From positions 1 to 64,000 of the IMG/VR virus record IMGVR_UViG_3300023175_000005: DNA of 64,000 nt; one strand, written 5' to 3'. The notes below the pieces were generated by a model. The model searched no databases and was not told the DNA's origin. It saw nothing but the letters and a program-made list of their open reading frames with translations. Both the position numbers and the translations under genes were made by a program. How positions within the stretch are numbered: position 1 is the first letter of the stretch; the number at the start of each line of letters is the position of its first letter. Shown one piece after another: positions 363-36,366 of the stretch.

Positions 363-468
363 TTGTTGGATTCTTTTTTTCATTTTTATATAAAATAAAG
401 CTTGCGTATATGTGTAGTTGTGTTATATTAGTAGTATGTTAACAAAAATGCATATAGGAGGGCAACAT

Positions 469-783
469 ATGCTAAATGGACAAGTTTGTTTAACGGAAGC
501 AGTGCGTGTAGTACTAGTAGAAGAAGACGCACAATGGAAGGCGGAGTTTGAAAAATACGGCTACAACACAGACATGTGGGCAACATATGGGGAATTTGAC
601 GAGGAGTGGCGAGAAGACGTTTTTACAATAGACGTATTTGAAGACGAAACATATGGCTTTATATGCGGCAATGCTAGTGACAGGCGTGTATACGGATTTA
701 CAGTAGACGTGTACAAAGCAGAGGAAGCAGACGGCACGTATAGTTTTTGGATAACAAACGAAGACTACGCTACAATAGGATAA
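469..783 (+). CDS. Early acidic hypothetical protein (104 aa, no Pro)
   Basis: Own promoter; GGAGGGC RBS before ATG 469. Confidence 0.8.
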   Translation: MLNGQVCLTEAVRVVLVEEDAQWKAEFEKYGYNTDMWATYGEFDEEWREDVFTIDVFEDETYGFICGNASDRRVYGFTVDVYKAEEADGTYSFWITNEDYATIG

Positions 784-876
784 AAAAAAGTTTGCGCACA
801 GTGCATTTTTTGCTTGCATTGTGCGCAACTTGTGCTATAGTGTAACTACATTAACAACTGCACATAGTGAGGGCTT

Positions 877-1098
877 ATGCAAAAAAAACTTACACGCACA
901 CAAGTAAACGCAATTACACAAACGTTCCGCAATGCAACTACACTGCAACAACAACTGCACTACTTGCAAAACATGCAGTATAAAAATGGAAGCAGAGTGT
1001 ATGACGTAACGCATTGGGAGGAAGCTATTGAAAGTATTATAGAAGAATTGTGTGAGTGCATGGATGAAAGCGTGTTGCAACACTATAAAGTTTTTTAA
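877..1098 (+). CDS. Early hypothetical protein
   Basis: Promoter 814, RBS GAGGGC 869. Confidence 0.8.
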   Translation: MQKKLTRTQVNAITQTFRNATTLQQQLHYLQNMQYKNGSRVYDVTHWEEAIESIIEELCECMDESVLQHYKVF

Positions 1099-1182
1099 GC
1101 AAACGCAAAAAAAATGGTTGCACTGTAGCACAAGTTGTGCTATAGTGTAACTATAAACTAAACTAGCATAGAGAGGGCAATT

Positions 1183-1380
1183 ATGCAAAATGTTTTCGTT
1201 TTACAATTACAGGGCACAGGCGACAGTGAAACTGCTTGGGAAAATTTTGGCGTGTTTGCTACACAACAGGATTTAGAAAAACGCTTGCGAGAAATTAACA
1301 ACGACTATTTGGATACAGACTTACAGTTTTTTAGACTGTTTGACAATGCACGTATGGAAGTTTGGGAATTAAAAAAATAA
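1183..1380 (+). CDS. Early hypothetical protein
   Basis: Promoter 1118, RBS GAGGGC 1173. Confidence 0.8.
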   Translation: MQNVFVLQLQGTGDSETAWENFGVFATQQDLEKRLREINNDYLDTDLQFFRLFDNARMEVWELKK

Positions 1381-1451
1381 AAAAACACTTGACAAGCACT
1401 GTAGTACATGCTATAGTGCTTGTATAAACTAAACTAGCATAGGAGGGTTAT

Positions 1452-1799
1452 ATGCTAAAACTTACAAACAAATATGTTGAAATTGAACGTGACGAAGACT
1501 TGCAGGAGACTTGCACTATTACTGAGTATGCTGTGGAAGGCACAGTAAAACTTGCTATGGATAGCATTTGGAATTACACAGGCAGTGACACTGTGCGTGT
1601 GGATGGTATACAGATAAGAGAAACACTGTATGAAGAAGATGGTGATACTAGCATTATGGTGAACGTGGAGCATGATGCTGCATGGAACATATACACAGAC
1701 ACGGGCTTTGAACGTGCAATTAGTGAGGCGCTTGGTATGGATATTACATTTACAGAGCAAGGCATGCAAGACGACAACTATGCAAGCATGGAGGTGTAA
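1452..1799 (+). CDS. Early acidic hypothetical protein
   Basis: Promoter 1389, RBS GGAGGGT. Confidence 0.85.
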   Translation: MLKLTNKYVEIERDEDLQETCTITEYAVEGTVKLAMDSIWNYTGSDTVRVDGIQIRETLYEEDGDTSIMVNVEHDAAWNIYTDTGFERAISEALGMDITFTEQGMQDDNYASMEV

Positions 1800-1811
1800 T
1801 AACACACAGTA

Positions 1812-1878
1812 GAGGAAGTACTGCACTGTACAGTGTAGTACTTTCGTATACCTCGTCAGGCCCCGCTGTTGGGGTCCG
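1812..1878. repeat. Two inverted repeats (AAGTACTGCACTG-TA-CAGTGTAGTACTT; GGCCCC...GGGGTCC)
   Basis: Visible hairpins after the 1452-1799 gene. Confidence 0.6.
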
Positions 1879-3383: not shown

Positions 3384-3398
3384 TCAAGACCCCCCTGC

Positions 3399-3455
3399 TA
3401 AGTCATTGAAAACAAAGAGAAAATTATTTTGCAAAAAAATGCTAAGTGCTTGTTT
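3399..3455. promoter_or_regulatory. Pair of IHF-like sites
   Basis: TAAGTCATTGAAA 3399-3411 and TAAGTGCTTGTTT 3443-3455; same motif as 316/350. Confidence 0.5.
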
Positions 3456-3544
3456 TTAAACAAAACAAAAAGCTTTACAAGTGCGTATACTTGTGCTATT
3501 GTGTATGTATAAGTTAACTAATATGTATACAGAGGAGCATTAGT

Positions 3545-3790
3545 ATGCAAAACAAAGTATTTTTAAACGCACAAAACGCTGCAATTGTTGTAACAGTAAA
3601 CAACAAAGTTGTTGCTACAGACGTACAAACTGCAGACGCACTTGTGCAAGTGTTTTTAACACATAACATTAATGTGCTAAAAGACAATATTATGTGTAGC
3701 AGCAGCATAGACTTTGCAAGTGAAGAGGGCTTTGCTAGTGACGCAAGTGCGCATAATATAATAGACGCTGCATTTGACACATTAGCATAG
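3545..3790 (+). CDS. Early hypothetical protein
   Basis: Promoter 3474, RBS GAGGAG. Confidence 0.8.
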   Translation: MQNKVFLNAQNAAIVVTVNNKVVATDVQTADALVQVFLTHNINVLKDNIMCSSSIDFASEEGFASDASAHNIIDAAFDTLA

Positions 3791-3810
3791 CACTGCTATA
3801 CTAAAGTATT

Positions 3811-3844
3811 GCAAGCACTATACATAATAGTGCTTGCTTTTTTT
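3811..3844 (+). terminator. Intrinsic terminator overlapping the next -35
   Basis: GCAAGCACTAT-ACATA-ATAGTGCTTGC followed by a T-run. Confidence 0.7.
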
Positions 3845-3899
3845 GTTTTTTGTGTTATATTAATTGTATAACTTTAACAAGCATATAGGAGGGCTTTAT

Positions 3900-4067
3900 A
3901 TGCAAAAACAATATACACTAGAAGACTTTACTAATTTGGAGTACTACAACAAAATGCGCTGTGCAGACGGAGACGTTGTACAGTACATTGCAAAACGTAA
4001 ACGTGCTAAAACACACTGCCTAATTACTGTAAAAAATAACGTAGTACTAAAAGTGCAAAAATATTAA
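3900..4067 (+). CDS. Early basic hypothetical protein (55 aa)
   Basis: Promoter 3834, RBS GGAGGGC, ATG 3900. Confidence 0.75.
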   Translation: MQKQYTLEDFTNLEYYNKMRCADGDVVQYIAKRKRAKTHCLITVKNNVVLKVQKY

Positions 4068-4139
4068 AAAAACACTTGACAAGTGCTATAGTGTGTGCTA
4101 TAGTGCTTGTATAACGTAACAGCATATGGAGGGCTTTAT

Positions 4140-4409
4140 ATGCAAAATACTACTACTAAAACAGCACGTCAAATTGTGCGCAACATCTTAAAGCAAAACA
4201 ATGTTATGTATTCTCCGCACAGTTACACAAACAAATGTGCAAATCCTGCACTGCGTAACATTTGCTTCCTCACTAAAAACTTAACTCCTACAGTAGTGCA
4301 GCAAATTGCTTCTGCGCTTAATGTTAGCAAAGTACATGCTACCAAGCCTATGTTTTACAATGTGCATCCGGATGCACGTTATTTGCGTATAGTACATTGC
4401 GCAAAATAA
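4140..4409 (+). CDS. Early basic hypothetical protein (no Glu/Gly/Trp)
   Basis: Promoter 4076, RBS GGAGGGC, ATG 4140. Confidence 0.75.
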   Translation: MQNTTTKTARQIVRNILKQNNVMYSPHSYTNKCANPALRNICFLTKNLTPTVVQQIASALNVSKVHATKPMFYNVHPDARYLRIVHCAK

Positions 4410-4495
4410 TTTAAAAAAATGCAAATTAGGGGTTGACAAACGGCTCCTAGTTTGCTATACTATATGTATAGTTAGACGCAACGGAGGGCAATCCA

Positions 4496-6513: not shown

Positions 6514-6600
6514 GCCTCCATGGTGGAATAGGTAGACACAAGAGACTTAAAATCTCTCGCTGATTACAGCGTCCCAGTTCGAGTCTGGGTGGAGGCACCA
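6514..6600 (+). tRNA. tRNA-Leu (TAA)
   Basis: Acceptor GCCTCCA/TGGAGGC, anticodon arm AGAGA-CTTAAAA-TCTCT, long variable arm, GTTCGAGTC T-loop, encoded CCA. Confidence 0.97.
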
Positions 6601-6613
6601 ATCTTTTTTTGAC

Positions 6614-6690
6614 GGTTGCGTAGCTCAACTGGATAGAGCAACAGACTTCTAATCTGTAGGTTGAGGGTTCGAGTCCTTCCGCAATCGCCA
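6614..6690 (+). tRNA. tRNA-Arg (TCT)
   Basis: Acceptor GGTTGCG/CGCAATC, anticodon arm ACAGA-CTTCTAA-TCTGT, GTTCGAGTC T-loop, encoded CCA. Confidence 0.97.
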
Positions 6691-7241: not shown

Positions 7242-7302
7242 AGGTTGACAAATGCATTTTAGAACGTATACTGATAACAATTGTAAAACACATGAGGGCA
7301 AC

Positions 7303-8298
7303 ATGAATATAGAAATTATCGATGGCGAATACAATATCAAAGGGAAACCAACACCTATGAACGGTTTGATGTTTCCTCTAGTCGAAGAGTTTAAAATTGG
7401 GACGGGGGGCGGCTATGTCACGGTTGACGCTAGACCAGTCGCTGGCTTGCCGGATCGTAACATTAAGATCCGAGTTGCCAATGCAGACGCCTACAAGAAA
7501 GCAGGTGAGTCTACAGTCGCCCCCCAGGCAGAGACCGATGAACAGACCATTGAACGGTTGCGTGAACGGTTCCTAATGCTAGAGGACATGACCAAAGCAG
7601 TCAAGAAAGGCGATGTACGTGCAATGATCGTATCAGGACCTCCAGGTGTCGGTAAGAGTCACGGTATCGAACAAGTACTAGATCGATACAAGACCATGGA
7701 GGCACTTGGCGGTGAGAAGAAGTACGAAGTAGTCAAAGGCGCAATGAGTCCGATCGGCTTGTACTGTAAACTCTACAAGAATTCAGCCAAAGGCAACGTT
7801 ATTGTGTTCGACGACTGCGACTCAGTATTCAACGACGAACTATCGCTGAACATCCTAAAGGCTGCTCTGGATTCAAAGAAGACCAGAACAATCCATTGGA
7901 ACACTGATTCGTTCAAATTGCGCAACGAAGGTGTGCCAGATCAGTTCAAGTTCGAAGCCAGTGCGATCTTTGTTACTAACCTTAAGTTCGACAAAGCCAA
8001 GGGCAAGATCCGTGAGCACTTGCAGGCACTAGAGAGTCGCTGCCACTACATGGATTTGACTATCGATACCGATAGAGAAAAGATGCTCAGAATTCAGCAG
8101 ATCGTCGGTGACGGCATGCTAAATGATTATAAGTTTGCGAAAGAGGTAGTCGCAGATATTGTCGACTTCGTAGACATTAATAAAAATAGACTGAGAGAAC
8201 TGTCACTACGTACAGTGCTCAAAGTCGCAGACCTAGCCAAAGCTTTCCCTACTCGTTGGGAAGCAATGGCAGAGAATACTGTGATGAGACGTGGTTAG
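7303..8298 (+). CDS. AAA+ P-loop ATPase
   Basis: Walker A GPPGVGKS, Walker B VIVFDDCD, ALESRC; RBS GAGGGC gives ATG 7303. Confidence 0.9.
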   Translation: MNIEIIDGEYNIKGKPTPMNGLMFPLVEEFKIGTGGGYVTVDARPVAGLPDRNIKIRVANADAYKKAGESTVAPQAETDEQTIERLRERFLMLEDMTKAVKKGDVRAMIVSGPPGVGKSHGIEQVLDRYKTMEALGGEKKYEVVKGAMSPIGLYCKLYKNSAKGNVIVFDDCDSVFNDELSLNILKAALDSKKTRTIHWNTDSFKLRNEGVPDQFKFEASAIFVTNLKFDKAKGKIREHLQALESRCHYMDLTIDTDREKMLRIQQIVGDGMLNDYKFAKEVVADIVDFVDINKNRLRELSLRTVLKVADLAKAFPTRWEAMAENTVMRRG

Positions 8299-33558: not shown

Positions 33559-34317
33559 CTATTTACGCCTATTTTTACGTAAAAAATCATTTATTTGCTG
33601 ATGTGTCATGTCAAATTTTTCTTTAAATCTTTGAAAATATTCTTTTTTATTTGCTTTGAAATATTCTTTTTGTGTATGCTCGCCTCTACCTTCTCTAAAT
33701 GTGCTATTTCTATACCAATCTATACTTAATAATGGCGTAGTAAATTCATCCCAACCTGCATTTAAATTATACATACGCATATCTTCAGTTGCACCTTGAC
33801 CGTGATGATATGTAACATCATACCAGCCGTGTTTTTTTCTTTTTAATTCACTAATATATTTTGTATTCCATATAGTAAATATAGGCTGTGCAAACATAGG
33901 ATTTTTAATAAAATTATCAACGCCTATTTGTTCAGGTATAGCAACATCTATCCAACCATCAACATTTTCTATTTTAGAATATATTGCACTCCATTTTTCT
34001 TTCTTTAGAGATTTTGTAGTCTTTACAATAGTTTTTTTATAGTTTTGTTTTAATAATGTTGCACTAGTGGTAATAGTAACAAAGAAAGATTTTCTTTGAT
34101 TTATTTCCCTATCAAAAATTACTCTATAAGCGCCGCTTACTTTCCTATTTGTTGGTAATGGAATTCTAGTTTTAGGATGCATGGGTTCTTTGTCAGAACC
34201 GTTATCTAGTATATAGATATCTTCTTCTAACATTGATCTACAAAGCATACGATATATTTTATCTGTATGCTCTGGCATATTATAGTTTATGATATAGGTA
34301 TTAAAAGAGTCCGACAT
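33559..34317 (-). CDS. GT2-like protein
   Basis: IINYN, ILDNGSD. Confidence 0.6.
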   Translation of the reverse strand: MSDSFNTYIINYNMPEHTDKIYRMLCRSMLEEDIYILDNGSDKEPMHPKTRIPLPTNRKVSGAYRVIFDREINQRKSFFVTITTSATLLKQNYKKTIVKTTKSLKKEKWSAIYSKIENVDGWIDVAIPEQIGVDNFIKNPMFAQPIFTIWNTKYISELKRKKHGWYDVTYHHGQGATEDMRMYNLNAGWDEFTTPLLSIDWYRNSTFREGRGEHTQKEYFKANKKEYFQRFKEKFDMTHQQINDFLRKNRRK

Positions 34318-35605
34318 TGTTTAGTACATCAAAAGGATCTGAGCCAAAGGTTGCTTCAAATTTTACAAGCATTTCTTTTTTAAGTGCTGCTTTTACTTCT
34401 TCAAAAACAAACTGCCATTTTTCTGCTGGTATGCACACAACACCGTCAGGATCACCAAAAATAATATCATTGTTGCGTACTCTTACACCGTTAACAGTTA
34501 CTGGCATATTCATTTCTTCAAGTGTACCTTCGTATCTAATATCGTCAGGCATTCTTGTATGTGCAAACAATGGTAAACCGATTTGTGTAACCCTATCTAC
34601 ATCACGTGTGGGGCCATCTACAACAACACCCACTGCACCGCTTCTATATGCAAAGTGTGCGTTTAAATCGCCAAAGTATGCTTTGTCTTTTACATCTGTG
34701 GAAACTATAATTACATCACCTGGTGCAACAAATTCATAACTTCCTAAGGCGTCAAATATACCTTCCCAATGTGGTAATGCAGGGTCTTTTTGATCTTGTG
34801 GTAATTCTTTTAATTTAAGCGTTTTTGCATATCCTAAAAATGTACCGTTGTTCATAGATTTTATTTCACTACTTAAAAAATGATCAATACCGTTTTCTTT
34901 GCAAATATCACTTAACAAACAACTACTAATACTTTTGCTTAACATTTTAAGTTGTTGTACTTTTTTTGCTCGTTGTCCTGCACAAATATCTCTTGCAAAT
35001 ACAAGATCTTCTTGATTGTTGATATCTACAAGTTGTAAAGGTGTGACAGGCCATAGCATTACATTATCTGTATAACGTTTTTCAACAGGATTTCCGTTTG
35101 TTTTTACAGCATAAAAACTCATTGCTTCGATAATATGATTTGGTAAGTCTACACTGTTAGGAATACTATTACCATATGCAGGTTGATGATCGTCCCATAA
35201 GTATAATTTTTGCTCAGATACAGCAACTAAACTTGTAGTAGGACTTTCCTTTAAATCTCTTAATGCAGGATCAATTACAGATTTATCTATAAACGGTGCT
35301 GTACATAATACTTGCACTACTATATCTGCATCTGTAACTCTTGATTCGTTAGCAAACATTGCATGTCCATCAGTTTTGTTGTTTGCTAGGTTAGGATCTC
35401 TATAGTGATGTTTAATCGGTAAGTCTCTTGCTAATCTGTGTAATTCTTCACTTTCACTATCTAGCCAAACCTCGTCTATTTCTTCACATTCTAATAACTG
35501 TCTTAATTTACGCTTAAACAAATACTCTCCGTCTAATACTTGTAAATTTTTATTTTCAATTCTTTCACTAGTTCCTTTTGCAGGTACAAATGCTACTGTT
35601 TTCAT
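34301..35605 (-). CDS. CMP-nonulosonate synthetase (NeuA-like) fused to RraA/HMG-aldolase
   Basis: PAKGTSERIENKN, TAPF, DIN; C-half AYFGDL, VVDGPTRD, GDPDGVV. Confidence 0.85.
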   Translation of the reverse strand: MKTVAFVPAKGTSERIENKNLQVLDGEYLFKRKLRQLLECEEIDEVWLDSESEELHRLARDLPIKHHYRDPNLANNKTDGHAMFANESRVTDADIVVQVLCTAPFIDKSVIDPALRDLKESPTTSLVAVSEQKLYLWDDHQPAYGNSIPNSVDLPNHIIEAMSFYAVKTNGNPVEKRYTDNVMLWPVTPLQLVDINNQEDLVFARDICAGQRAKKVQQLKMLSKSISSCLLSDICKENGIDHFLSSEIKSMNNGTFLGYAKTLKLKELPQDQKDPALPHWEGIFDALGSYEFVAPGDVIIVSTDVKDKAYFGDLNAHFAYRSGAVGVVVDGPTRDVDRVTQIGLPLFAHTRMPDDIRYEGTLEEMNMPVTVNGVRVRNNDIIFGDPDGVVCIPAEKWQFVFEEVKAALKKEMLVKFEATFGSDPFDVLNNVGLF

Positions 35606-36366
35606 AATTTCTCCTCTATGGTAACTTCTTTGCCTTTTTTATAGTTGCTCTTATTAGCTTTAGTCACCCAGTGTCTTAAATATTCTTTTAATTCTGTGTG
35701 CATAAAAGGTACAATACTATCAACTGCTGTTGCAAGATGTTTCAATTTAGAGCCTTTCTTTTCAGCAGTATGTATGGCATCCCACCATACACCTGTATCC
35801 AATCTCCTACTGACTTTTAATATCTGTAGGGAATTATGACACAATTTATAAAAGTCAATAACATGTTGTGTATTTTTATCTTTCATGTTAAGCATAAAAA
35901 ATCCAGTTTCTGCTTCTTTTCCTTTTACTTTGCCGCCTGCTGGAATATCAACAGAAAGTGTGTCTTCTGGTAATAAGTTTTCTATAAACTCTAAAGGTAT
36001 TTTTTTATTAGTAATTACATCACTATCTAACCATATAAAAACATCTTGTTCACATTCTTGTAATGCTGCTGTAATTACATGGCCTTTAATCCAACTAAAT
36101 TTGTATCTAGAAAATAAATCTTTTCCCTTAGGATCATGCGGTACATGTGGATATATTAATTCTAAAAATTTATCTAAGTCATTACGAACCTTTTCAAAAT
36201 CTTTTACAATCAATCTAGGATTATCAATGTCAGGTACAAACCCTTCAGCCCATAATTCTATTGAAATATTTTTAGGCCAGTATTCTAAAAAACTAGTAAT
36301 ACAATCTTTTCCAATTTGATTGTAGTACGGTTCGTGTTGTGATGTAACTACTCTAAAAGTTCGCAT
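35602..36366 (-). CDS. GT-A glycosyltransferase
   Basis: IWLDSD, AETGFF; paralogue of the 27535 and 28446 genes. Confidence 0.75.
   Translation of the reverse strand: MRTFRVVTSQHEPYYNQIGKDCITSFLEYWPKNISIELWAEGFVPDIDNPRLIVKDFEKVRNDLDKFLELIYPHVPHDPKGKDLFSRYKFSWIKGHVITAALQECEQDVFIWLDSDVITNKKIPLEFIENLLPEDTLSVDIPAGGKVKGKEAETGFFMLNMKDKNTQHVIDFYKLCHNSLQILKVSRRLDTGVWWDAIHTAEKKGSKLKHLATAVDSIVPFMHTELKEYLRHWVTKANKSNYKKGKEVTIEEKL

Follow-up and report, generated by a model that had tools for sequence, protein, structure and literature searches.

Small early genes of an uncultured jumbo phage and many relatives contain almost no YC dinucleotides on the coding strand

The window analyzed here is a stretch of 64,000 nucleotides (positions 1 to 64,000 of IMG/VR record IMGVR_UViG_3300023175_000005) from the 256-kb genome of an uncultured jumbo phage. 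It contains two islands of small early genes in which the coding strand has almost no TC or CC (YC), and in which one gene lacks GA and GG (GR) instead. The features, all on the plus strand, are as follows.

381-1844: island 1, 1,464 bp with 3 YC (TCC at 926-927, TC at 1196; 3 of 221 C preceded by Y, P 6e-38), holding four small genes, each with its own promoter and GGAGG-type ribosome-binding site; GR is at near-normal frequency in the coding parts (GR index 0.35-0.86).
469-783: YC-free gene for an acidic 104-aa protein without Pro (family 125; P0, E14, D10), with 0 YC against 12.5-15.7 expected.
877-1098: YC-poor gene, 73 aa, no Pro, with 2 YC against 11-13 expected.
1183-1380: YC-poor gene, 65 aa, no Pro (family 46, purged in all 5 members).
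1452-1799: YC-free gene, 115 aa (family 16), whose homologues in other phages are unpurged and contain Pro; the predicted fold is confident (AlphaFold pLDDT 93.4) and beta-rich, with no PDB match.
3398-3408: CTAAGTCATTG motif directly before island 2 (also at 349-359 before island 1).
3404-4168: YC-free part of island 2, with a single YC at 4019; GR is also pushed to near the minimum the proteins allow (GR 11 with minimum 10 and expected 18.8; GR 8 with minimum 6 and expected 13.9).
3474-3502: promoter-like site TTTACA-17-TATTGT of gene 3545-3790, with no YC and no GR in the spacer.
3545-3790: YC-free gene, 81 aa (family 24), with a conserved MCSSSIDF motif in which all Ser are AGY; homologues in the related loci L012 and L065 are unpurged.
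3811-3837: intrinsic-terminator-like hairpin followed by a T run, built without any YC or GR.
3900-4067: YC-poor gene, 55 aa (family 32), with 1 YC.
4076-4104: promoter TTGACA-17-TATAGT of gene 4140-4409, followed by the GGAGGG ribosome-binding site at 4128-4133.
4134-4428: GR-free stretch apart from the TCCGGA at 4368-4373, with 17 YC.
4140-4409: the 'mirror' gene (family 129), encoding a basic 89-aa protein with P5, E0, D1, G0 and W0; the predicted fold is a confident alpha-beta-beta-alpha-beta-beta (AlphaFold pLDDT 93.0), and the protein is a distant homologue of the YC-free family 67.

The original prediction described this second island, the flip of the depleted strand at gene 4140-4409, the mirrored amino-acid usage and the depleted intergenic DNA, and all four statements proved correct. 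Window 3404-4019 and 4020-4169 are YC-free, leaving CC at 4019 as the only YC in 3405-4168, or 1 of 117 C preceded by Y against 36% in the neighboring early genes (binomial P 1.7e-21). In 4134-4428 the only GA/GG are at 4370-4371, inside TCCGGA, so that 2 of 42 G are followed by R against a background of 53% (P 1.9e-11), whereas in 20,000 mononucleotide shuffles the mean was 20.6 and the minimum 10. The six YC-free genes encode no Pro. Intergenic DNA of the islands, with the Shine-Dalgarno removed, has 9 GR per 100 G and 1 YC per 82 C, compared with 118 per 254 and 73 per 189 in non-island early intergenic DNA. These are the longest YC and GR gaps in the 64 kb, with runs of 546-648 nt without YC on the sense strand, and the only 270-bp windows with 2 or fewer YC lie in 355-1852 and 3394-4185. 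The islands are also C-poor and G-rich (C 222 and G 347 in island 1; C 110 and G 134 in island 2), a relation that is reversed in 4133-4428 (C 64 and G 43).

The depletion goes beyond amino-acid composition. Resampling synonymous codons with the phage's normal usage gives 7-19 YC per gene, whereas 0-2 are observed, and for 4140-4409 it gives 10.7 +/- 2.7 GR, whereas 2 are observed and the minimum of 5,000 samples was 3. The flip at 4140-4409 is maintained by selection, as the orthologue at L005:6398-6667 (loci of related phages are designated L) differs at 37 nt, with 22 synonymous against 9 non-synonymous codon differences, yet stays at 3 GR. Of the 61 homologue clusters of this gene, 59 keep Pro and almost all have very little Glu/Asp/Gly/Trp. 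Together with the ribosome-binding sites and the confidently predicted folds, this conservation shows that these are real protein-coding genes. The same family also exists in the opposite dialect: L066:587-853 has YC 0 and GR 19, L068:217-483 has YC 0 and GR 6, and family 67 has YC 0 and GR 22-31. Free use of Glu/Gly by homologues had been named beforehand as a result that would count against the signal, and distant homologues do use them freely; this shows that the protein does not dictate the composition, but not that the signal is chance.

The purge recurs in 18 of 29 related phage loci with enough upstream sequence, in runs up to 1,969 bp, and the same gene families exist purged and unpurged. 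In 28.6 kb of island DNA, TC and CC are each depleted about 100-fold and no other word is missing. YC density per gene is bimodal, either near 0 or at least 0.033 per nt. In purged homologues, Pro columns become gap (12), Ala (8), Asp (2) and Thr, Val, Gly or Pro (1 each), and none become Leu, Ser or Phe, while conserved Ser shifts from TCN 21 and AGY 23 to AGY 30 and TCN 0. One purged example is a 172-aa ORF without Pro, Glu, Asp, Gly or Trp.

The purge follows the sense strand of each gene. Minus-strand genes L063:6008-6352, L063:6433-6675 and L031:6313-6708 are YC-free in their own sense, whereas the non-transcribed spacer between divergent promoters, L063:6755-6830, is full of YC and GR. 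The purge runs from about the promoter to about the terminator, with YC resuming within 60 nt upstream of the -35. All purged genes sit behind sigma-70-type promoters and strong ribosome-binding sites. In L027 and L044 the last YCs lie in the promoter spacer, directly before the extended -10, but these two were found by eye; in a strict scan, 8 of the 9 promoter hits had no YC in the spacer and the ninth looks spurious. The window's two first promoters (402-429 and 3474-3502) are also clean, compared with YC in the spacer of 8 of 12 non-island promoters in the window.

In several lineages only YC is purged and GR is unconstrained. In the lineage of the window, however, YC and GR are avoided together in the same genes: class A genes use G-ending codons 67 times before R and 240 times before Y (p 7e-51), and class B genes use Ser AGY 34 times and TCN 7 times. 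At codon junctions GA is avoided more than GG (13 against 54), whereas AG is not depleted. This GA depletion is seen only in the window's sub-lineage, where GG is avoided too.

Searches of Pfam and PHROGs returned nothing for the island proteins, the ESM Atlas gave nothing useful, and PDB sequence and fold searches gave no significant match. Among cultured relatives there is no near DNA match, family 16 has no homologue in phage records, and PA5oct shows only one small YC/GR-free gene.

The interpretation attached to the original prediction is partly supported. A constraint that acts on nucleotides and is strong enough to set amino-acid usage agrees with our results. The proposed rule that YC never occurs on both strands locally does not hold, and the inference drawn from it, that an mRNA-level cause is excluded in favor of a double-strand, two-half-site recognizer, is not supported. 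Besides the sense-strand specificity and the lineages that purge only YC, the joint avoidance of YC and GR in the window's lineage would be superfluous under an either/or rule. Variants of gene 4140-4409 inside islands carry both: L069:3677-3946 has YC 8 and GR 4, and L071:2845-3114 has YC 14 and GR 7, with a YC and a GR 3 nt apart. TCCGGA is conserved, and YC 1196 has GR within 15-20 nt on both sides. No forbidden YC-GR spacing can be defined, because pairs occur at 0, 3, 15-20, 36 and 40-50 nt.

Our best, though tentative, reading is that the islands are early expression cassettes of a jumbo myovirus, read by host sigma-70 RNA polymerase, whose sense strand and therefore mRNA has been recoded to be invisible to a host factor that reads nascent single-stranded RNA through a two-base motif. 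The best candidate, and the best-known such factor, is the termination factor Rho. Each of its six primary binding clefts holds one 5'-YC (PMC12360218). Rho silences foreign and phage transcription, and it blocks expression from phage DNA (PMC3526286). An RNA without YC would offer Rho no loading site, so the first phage proteins would be made even before ribosome coupling or any anti-termination is in place. The avoided unit is exactly YC, and the purge lies on the RNA-like strand in both orientations. Apart from gene 4140-4409, the island RNA would lack YC over stretches of about 80 nt and be C-poor and G-rich (C<G), as expected of a Rho-resistant (rut-less) transcript. Isolated YCs are tolerated at 1-3 per 300-1,400 nt, as are YCs in the last ~45 nt before the island-1 terminator, which fits a recognizer that needs several sites over about 80 nt. 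The analysis itself establishes the purge, its strand and extent, that it is selected, and its repeated gain and loss; that the agent acts on RNA, that it is Rho, and that transcription of the islands would be insensitive to it are inferred from sequence alone.

Several findings sit poorly with Rho. It gives no reason for the GA/GG avoidance, which is the exact reverse complement of YC; this is a coincidence under the model and hints at a DNA-level or two-strand cause. The YC-free spacers of most island promoters, including most 'first' promoters, would require read-through or shared ancestry of promoters if the cause were RNA only. Rho is universal, yet 11 of the 29 related loci have no island and L065 carries the same genes unpurged. 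The mRNA of gene 4140-4409 has C>G and 17 YC, so it should be Rho-sensitive. In our view, a second, graded avoidance of GA/GG acts on the same cassettes in the window's sub-lineage, for which an enzyme like CmdT, which ADP-ribosylates GA in single-stranded RNA (bioRxiv 10.1101/2024.02.24.581662), is one precedent. Gene 4140-4409 encodes a basic protein that needs Pro but not Glu, Gly or Trp; in it the GR purge could go to completion, whereas the YC purge, which cannot reach zero (minimum 8), is relaxed.

Two alternatives are less likely, but comparable with each other. One is evasion of another RNA-targeting factor with a dinucleotide preference, such as a defense endoribonuclease (HEPN-type collateral RNases), an RNA ADP-ribosyltransferase or the phage's own host-shutoff RNase, with one activity preferring YC and a second GA/GG; early mRNAs lacking the motif would stay translatable while other RNA is hit. 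It predicts the same strand and extent as the Rho model, and the patchy distribution among related phages fits variable host defenses. The stronger avoidance of GA than of GG at codon junctions, without avoidance of AG, would match CmdT's preference for GA, and Cas13-type HEPN nucleases have base preferences (PMC8209922). However, no enzyme with YC specificity is identified, tolerance of 1-3 YC per cassette is less natural for a nuclease that needs one cut, the island-1 terminator region carries about 10 YC, and CmdTAC is triggered late in infection, not early.

The other is transcription-coupled attack on single-stranded DNA, in which a host enzyme acting on exposed YC, such as an APOBEC-like cytosine deaminase or an ssDNA-modifying toxin, would hit the non-template strand of heavily transcribed early genes hardest and the template strand less, leaving the sense strand completely and the antisense strand partially purged. 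This unifies YC and GR in one cause, with sense much stronger than antisense, would explain why promoter DNA seems to be purged as well, and fits the restriction to highly transcribed early cassettes and the patchy distribution. Yet gene 4140-4409 keeps 17 YC on the exposed non-template strand, 9 of them synonymously avoidable, and in many lineages the template strand shows no avoidance at all (p 0.38). There is no C-to-T footprint, as Pro is replaced by Ala or gaps and not by Leu, Ser or Phe, and conserved Ser is kept as AGY; we are aware of no such anti-phage deaminase.

The double-strand recognizer, for example a restriction-type enzyme that needs YC on both strands (two inverted half-sites, or sites containing both YC and GR), is very unlikely. 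It accounts for genes that are YC-free, GR-free or both, for one family existing in both dialects, and for promoters that seem to belong to the purged unit. Any palindrome containing YC also contains GR, and 94 of 182 palindromic sites are excluded by a one-strand purge. However, it is weakened by the L069 and L071 variants, in which YC and GR lie 3-50 nt apart, by the conserved TCCGGA, and by minimization of GR in genes already YC-free and of YC in GR-free genes, which would be pointless. A one-strand YC purge excludes only 154 of 617 known recognition sequences (25%), ranking 49th of 120 two-dinucleotide purges. Other palindromes (TGCA, GTATAC, TGCGCA, GTTAAC) are common in the islands, and the lowest tetramer ratios are modest (CGCG 0.28, AGCT 0.51), so generic palindrome or restriction avoidance was rejected. 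A cut anywhere else in the genome would still be lethal, and the DNA between the islands is unpurged.

Neutral mutational bias, such as deamination of YC on the non-transcribed strand, or a side effect of protein composition has only the somewhat AT-richer islands and mild TT enrichment in its favor, and is effectively refuted by the synonymous expectation, the context dependence at codon junctions, the shift of Ser from TCN to AGY (two or three changes), the purge kept through 22 synonymous differences, and homologues with the same fold-family sequence that use Pro or Glu/Gly freely. Avoidance of RNA structure was rejected because island mRNAs are no less structured than synonymous recodings (z from -2.1 to +2.1). 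An orientation-independent cost of the double-stranded YC:GR step was rejected because acidic genes keep 50 or more GR while removing every YC and some lineages show no GR avoidance, and replication-strand or DNA-entry explanations because purged and mirror genes alternate at about 300-bp scale (L005) and unpurged genes lie between the two islands.

Known phage answers to Rho are proteins or RNA elements, such as lambda N and Q or P4 Psu, and removal of every YC from a transcript is, to our knowledge and in the literature searched, not described. Restriction-site avoidance and the T7/EcoP15I strand bias, in which type III enzymes need inversely oriented sites, share the selected loss of targets and a one-orientation-only logic; here, however, the unit is a 2-nt degenerate motif rather than a 4-8 bp site, the purge is limited to early cassettes, palindromes in general are not avoided, and variants with both orientations exist. 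Animal viruses are likewise recoded to escape host factors that read a dinucleotide, as with CpG and ZAP (PMC10191365). UpA and RNase L, and TC and APOBEC3, are further examples. Those depletions are partial and genome-wide, whereas here the depletion is essentially absolute, is local to early genes and removes amino acids. CmdT is a bacterial anti-phage enzyme with dinucleotide specificity on mRNA, and GA is the most strongly avoided member of the GR class here, but GG is avoided too, CmdT is released late in infection and no link to this phage's host is known; its authors judged escape by mutation implausible for so short a motif. Host-takeover or pre-early modules of large lytic phages, such as the T5 first-step-transfer region and the SPO1 terminal-redundancy module, are also arrays of very small orphan genes expressed first, each with a strong host-type promoter and ribosome-binding site, but no dinucleotide purge is reported for them and no homology was found.

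Here there is an essentially complete, selected purge of a degenerate dinucleotide that is confined to early expression cassettes, recurs across dozens of phage genomes and strips Pro (or Glu/Asp/Gly/Trp) from folded proteins. It offers a sequence signature that finds immediate-early and probable anti-host genes without homology, and a natural set of paired purged and unpurged homologues for asking what reads YC in infected cells. We consider it somewhat more likely than not that a clade of marine-type jumbo phages writes its first-expressed genes in a reduced dinucleotide alphabet, without TC or CC and in some without GA or GG either, a trait gained and lost repeatedly. This would show that a host recognizer with only a two-base motif, whether Rho's YC clefts or an unknown RNA- or ssDNA-directed defense, can be escaped by recoding whole genes at the cost of deleting amino acids from the proteins. 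If Rho is the agent, this would be the first case of a purely cis-encoded, protein-free anti-termination strategy, and a direct way to measure how far Rho limits phage early expression; if it is not, the purge points to an undiscovered YC-specific antiviral activity.

The window comprises the first 64 kb of the 256,558-bp IMG/VR contig UViG_3300023175_000005, which belongs to an uncultured jumbo myovirus. Its large terminase is 52% identical to that of Pseudomonas phage PA5oct and 42% to Rak2-like phages, and it encodes a 1,109-aa tail sheath, a DnaB-like helicase, and a primase. In the early region, almost every gene is preceded by a near-consensus TTGACA-N16-18-TATAnT promoter and a GGAGG ribosome-binding site. 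The features of the window considered here are as follows (YC, the dinucleotides TC and CC; GR, GA and GG).

1-10.7 kb, plus strand: early region of small orphan genes
100-377: repeat array upstream of island 1
349-359 and 3398-3408: exact 11-mer just before islands 1 and 2
381-1844, plus strand: island 1, depleted of YC
1452-1799, plus strand: gene of family 16
3404-4168, plus strand: YC-depleted part of island 2
3545-3790, plus strand: gene of family 24
4134-4428, plus strand: GR-depleted stretch of island 2
4140-4409, plus strand: the 'mirror' gene, family 129
6514-6600 and 6614-6690: tRNA-Leu(UAA) and tRNA-Arg(UCU)
7252-8298: gene for an ATPase
14176-37414, minus strand: large cluster of sugar-nucleotide genes
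35419-35707: stretch poor in GR

The sugar-nucleotide cluster includes a Nol-like carbamoyltransferase, a KdsA-like DAHP_synth_1 protein, two CMP-KDO-synthetase-like cytidylyltransferases (one fused to RraA-like), GT8, a mannose-6-P isomerase/cytidylyltransferase, and a GDP-mannose 4,6-dehydratase, and may serve surface or DNA glycosylation.

The original prediction described a YC-free island in which the depleted strand flips at gene 4140-4409, and each of its factual statements held. YC is absent from 3404-4019 and 4020-4169, whereas GR is absent from 4133-4370 and again to 4428, apart from TCCGGA. Against the neighboring early genes, the binomial probabilities are 1.7e-21 for YC in 3404-4168, 1.9e-11 for GR in 4134-4428, and 6e-38 for the first island, and none of 20,000 shuffles came near the observed GR count. 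These are the longest YC and GR gaps in the window. The only other stretch with 2 or fewer GR per 270 bp is 35419-35707, which lies across the junction of the minus-strand genes 35602-36366 and 34301-35605, so that their sense strand is YC-poor there, although the significance is borderline. Given each protein sequence, normal codon usage predicts 7-19 YC per gene, whereas 0-2 are observed; for gene 4140-4409 it predicts 10.7 GR, against 2 observed and a minimum possible of 1. The YC-free proteins are fully compatible with zero YC, whereas ordinary neighbors need at least 3-17. Intergenic DNA of the islands lacks both classes outside the Shine-Dalgarno and some -35 boxes.

The phenomenon is general in this phage clade. 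Homologs of the nearby ATPase retrieved 63 loci (numbered L001 onward), and of the 29 with at least 4 kb upstream, 18 carry YC-free runs of 240-2,870 bp in total, with single runs reaching 1,969 bp (L033:28-1996). The remaining loci with at least 4 kb upstream of the ATPase gene have no island (L065, L015, L016, L028, L037, L042, L047-L049, L054, and L060) and constitute natural controls. In the cultured relative PA5oct (L064; NC_071039.1), only one small gene (gp099) lies in a 244-bp YC-free stretch (35836-36079), which is partly GR-free, but the significance is unclear, because that genome has only 32% GC. A gene census gives a bimodal picture, as about 70 genes have 0-2 sense-strand YC and no Pro, whereas everything else has at least 0.033 YC per nt. 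The state belongs to the locus and not to the protein family. Family 16 is YC-free in L001, L002, L008, L050, and L066, but has 15-41 YC and several Pro in L013, L037, L041, L043, L048, and L060, and family 24 is purged in most loci and unpurged in L012, L065, and L071. In 28.6 kb of pooled island DNA no other word is missing, so the unit of avoidance is the dinucleotide.

The 11-mer CTAAGTCATTG before both islands of the window recurs in 10 of 63 related loci (found also in L005, L012, L013, L020, L026, L031, L044, L050, and L063), often as CTAAGTCATTGAAATCATTG and usually near island edges, and may be a protein-binding site. The repeat array upstream of island 1 has TACTAC/TACTATA-rich 33-nt and 23-nt repeats, CTAACCGTTTGAA twice, and TAAGTC(A/T)TTGTTT..GGATTCTTTT twice, and similar TAGTAGTGTAG arrays lie upstream of the islands in L005 and L020. 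Island genes nearly all begin ATGCAAAA... (MQN, MQK, or MQT), as seen in the window at 469, 877, 1183, 3545, 3900, and 4140 and in most island genes of other loci. Neighboring genes share almost identical promoter, ribosome-binding-site, and start cassettes, which suggests spread by duplication of the cassette.

The purge reflects selection and not mutation. Where unpurged homologs have Pro, purged ones have a gap, Ala, Asp, Thr, Val, or Gly, and none has the Leu, Ser, or Phe expected from C-to-T change. Conserved Ser columns use TCN 21 times and AGY 23 times in unpurged genes, but AGY 30 times and TCN 0 times in purged genes. Gene 4140-4409 and its ortholog L005:6398-6667 differ at 37 nt, with 22 synonymous and 9 non-synonymous codons, yet GR stays at 2-3 while the YC positions turn over. 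AlphaFold models of family 129 and family 16 are confident (pLDDT 93.0 and 93.4), so these are real folded proteins written in a restricted alphabet.

The purge follows the sense strand. In L063 and L031, an island gene family lies on the minus strand with its own ribosome-binding site, promoter, and terminator, and there the minus strand is YC-free, which appears as a GR-free run on plus. The ortholog in L020 lies on the plus strand and is YC-free on plus. Meanwhile, between the divergent promoters of L063 (6755-6830) both YC and GR are abundant. At island starts YC resumes within 60 nt upstream of the -35, and in L027 and L044 the last YCs lie inside the promoter spacer, directly before the extended -10. 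At the 3' end, island 1 stays clean until about 30 nt before its terminator hairpin, which itself carries YC, whereas the island-2 terminator is built without YC. Most island promoter spacers, including first promoters, are also free of YC, and in the window they are free of GR too, whereas 8 of 12 non-island promoters have YC in the spacer. The purged unit is therefore roughly 'promoter to terminator', although the promoter itself is only possibly under the constraint. Non-island early promoters of the window (at 1910, 2210, 2796, 4433, 4697, 5985, and others) carry GG, usually TTAGGGG, directly upstream of TTGACA, which the GR-purged islands drop, often using TTGCAT, TTGCAC, or TTTACA as the -35.

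The mirror gene has 61 homolog clusters in metagenomes, of which 59 keep Pro (1-6) and almost all have very little Glu/Asp/Gly/Trp, typically 0-3 in total. The two most divergent clusters are Pro-free and use Asp/Glu/Gly, and their DNA confirms the opposite dialect, with L066:587-853 having YC 0 and GR 19 and L068:217-483 having YC 0 and GR 6. The distant homolog family 67 (29% identity, E 1e-8) is YC-free with 22-31 GR. The flip is therefore real, old, and maintained, and the protein does not dictate it. However, it is not an either/or switch. L069, a close relative of the window, has this gene inside an island with YC 8 and GR 4, and L071 has YC 14 and GR 7, with a YC and a GR 3 nt apart. 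In L065, a phage whose whole region is unpurged and which carries families 129 and 24 with normal YC and GR, the gene has YC 9 and GR 11.

In the window's sub-lineage, GR is avoided in the YC-free genes as well. G-ending codons precede R-starting codons 67 times and Y-starting codons 240 times, while A-ending codons do so 675 and 289 times (p 7e-51), and G|A junctions number 13 and G|G junctions 54. Arg is CGT/CGC 41 times and AGR/CGR 8 times, and Gly, Trp, and Glu are depleted. The early region carries the tRNA-Leu(UAA) and tRNA-Arg(UCU) genes. TTA is 29% of Leu codons in purged genes against 13% in normal genes, and AGA is avoided in the GR-purged genes, which use CGT/CGC. Other lineages (L026, L031, L033, L039, L043, and others) show no GR avoidance (p 0.38) while still having zero YC. 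The GR-free genes in turn avoid YC at the codon level (Ser AGY 34 against TCN 7), and in gene family 143 YC sits almost at its minimum. Some ORFs lack both classes, for example L004:13030-13548, which encodes 172 aa with no Pro, Glu, Asp, Gly, or Trp and lies in a 785-bp stretch that lacks both YC and GR. The overall picture is a strict sense-strand YC purge everywhere, plus a graded GA/GG purge in one sub-lineage; acidic proteins keep GR, and the Pro-requiring basic family 129 keeps YC.

Whereas the purge, its strand, and its extent are read directly from the sequences, the agent behind it is inferred from sequence alone. Once the readings dismissed below are set aside, what remains is a strand-specific recognizer tied to transcription. 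The only well-characterized bacterial factor that, to our knowledge, reads 5'-YC on single-stranded RNA is Rho. Each of its primary clefts binds one YC dinucleotide and Rho suppresses phage gene expression, and its need for several sites over tens of nucleotides fits the tolerance of isolated YCs and the all-or-nothing distribution. We tentatively rank evasion of Rho first, although it does not explain the GA/GG purge, the promoter-spacer purge, or the patchy distribution. A second RNA-directed enzyme is one possible addition; CmdT modifies GA in mRNA, and its authors thought escape by mutation implausible. Alternatively, a single agent acting on YC in transiently single-stranded DNA of both strands would explain why the second motif is the reverse complement of the first, but this model fails on the 17 YC kept on the exposed strand of gene 4140-4409.

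The interpretation offered by the original prediction, that YC never occurs on both strands locally because a double-strand recognizer with two half-sites is evaded, was only partly supported. The flip itself stands, but the two-half-site rule is contradicted by the variants carrying both classes, by conserved TCCGGA, and by the joint minimization of YC and GR. As a restriction-evasion device, a one-strand YC purge would be mediocre, because it excludes 154 of 617 sites and ranks 49th of 120. An orientation-independent double-strand cost is excluded, because acidic genes keep 50 GR while removing every YC, and avoidance of RNA structure is rejected.

Literature searches found no report of YC-free or dinucleotide-purged phage genes. 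Conceptually, the phenomenon is target-motif avoidance, and what sets it apart within that kind is the length of the motif, the completeness of its removal, the confinement to early cassettes, the loss of amino acids from the proteins, and the repeated gain and loss of the trait.
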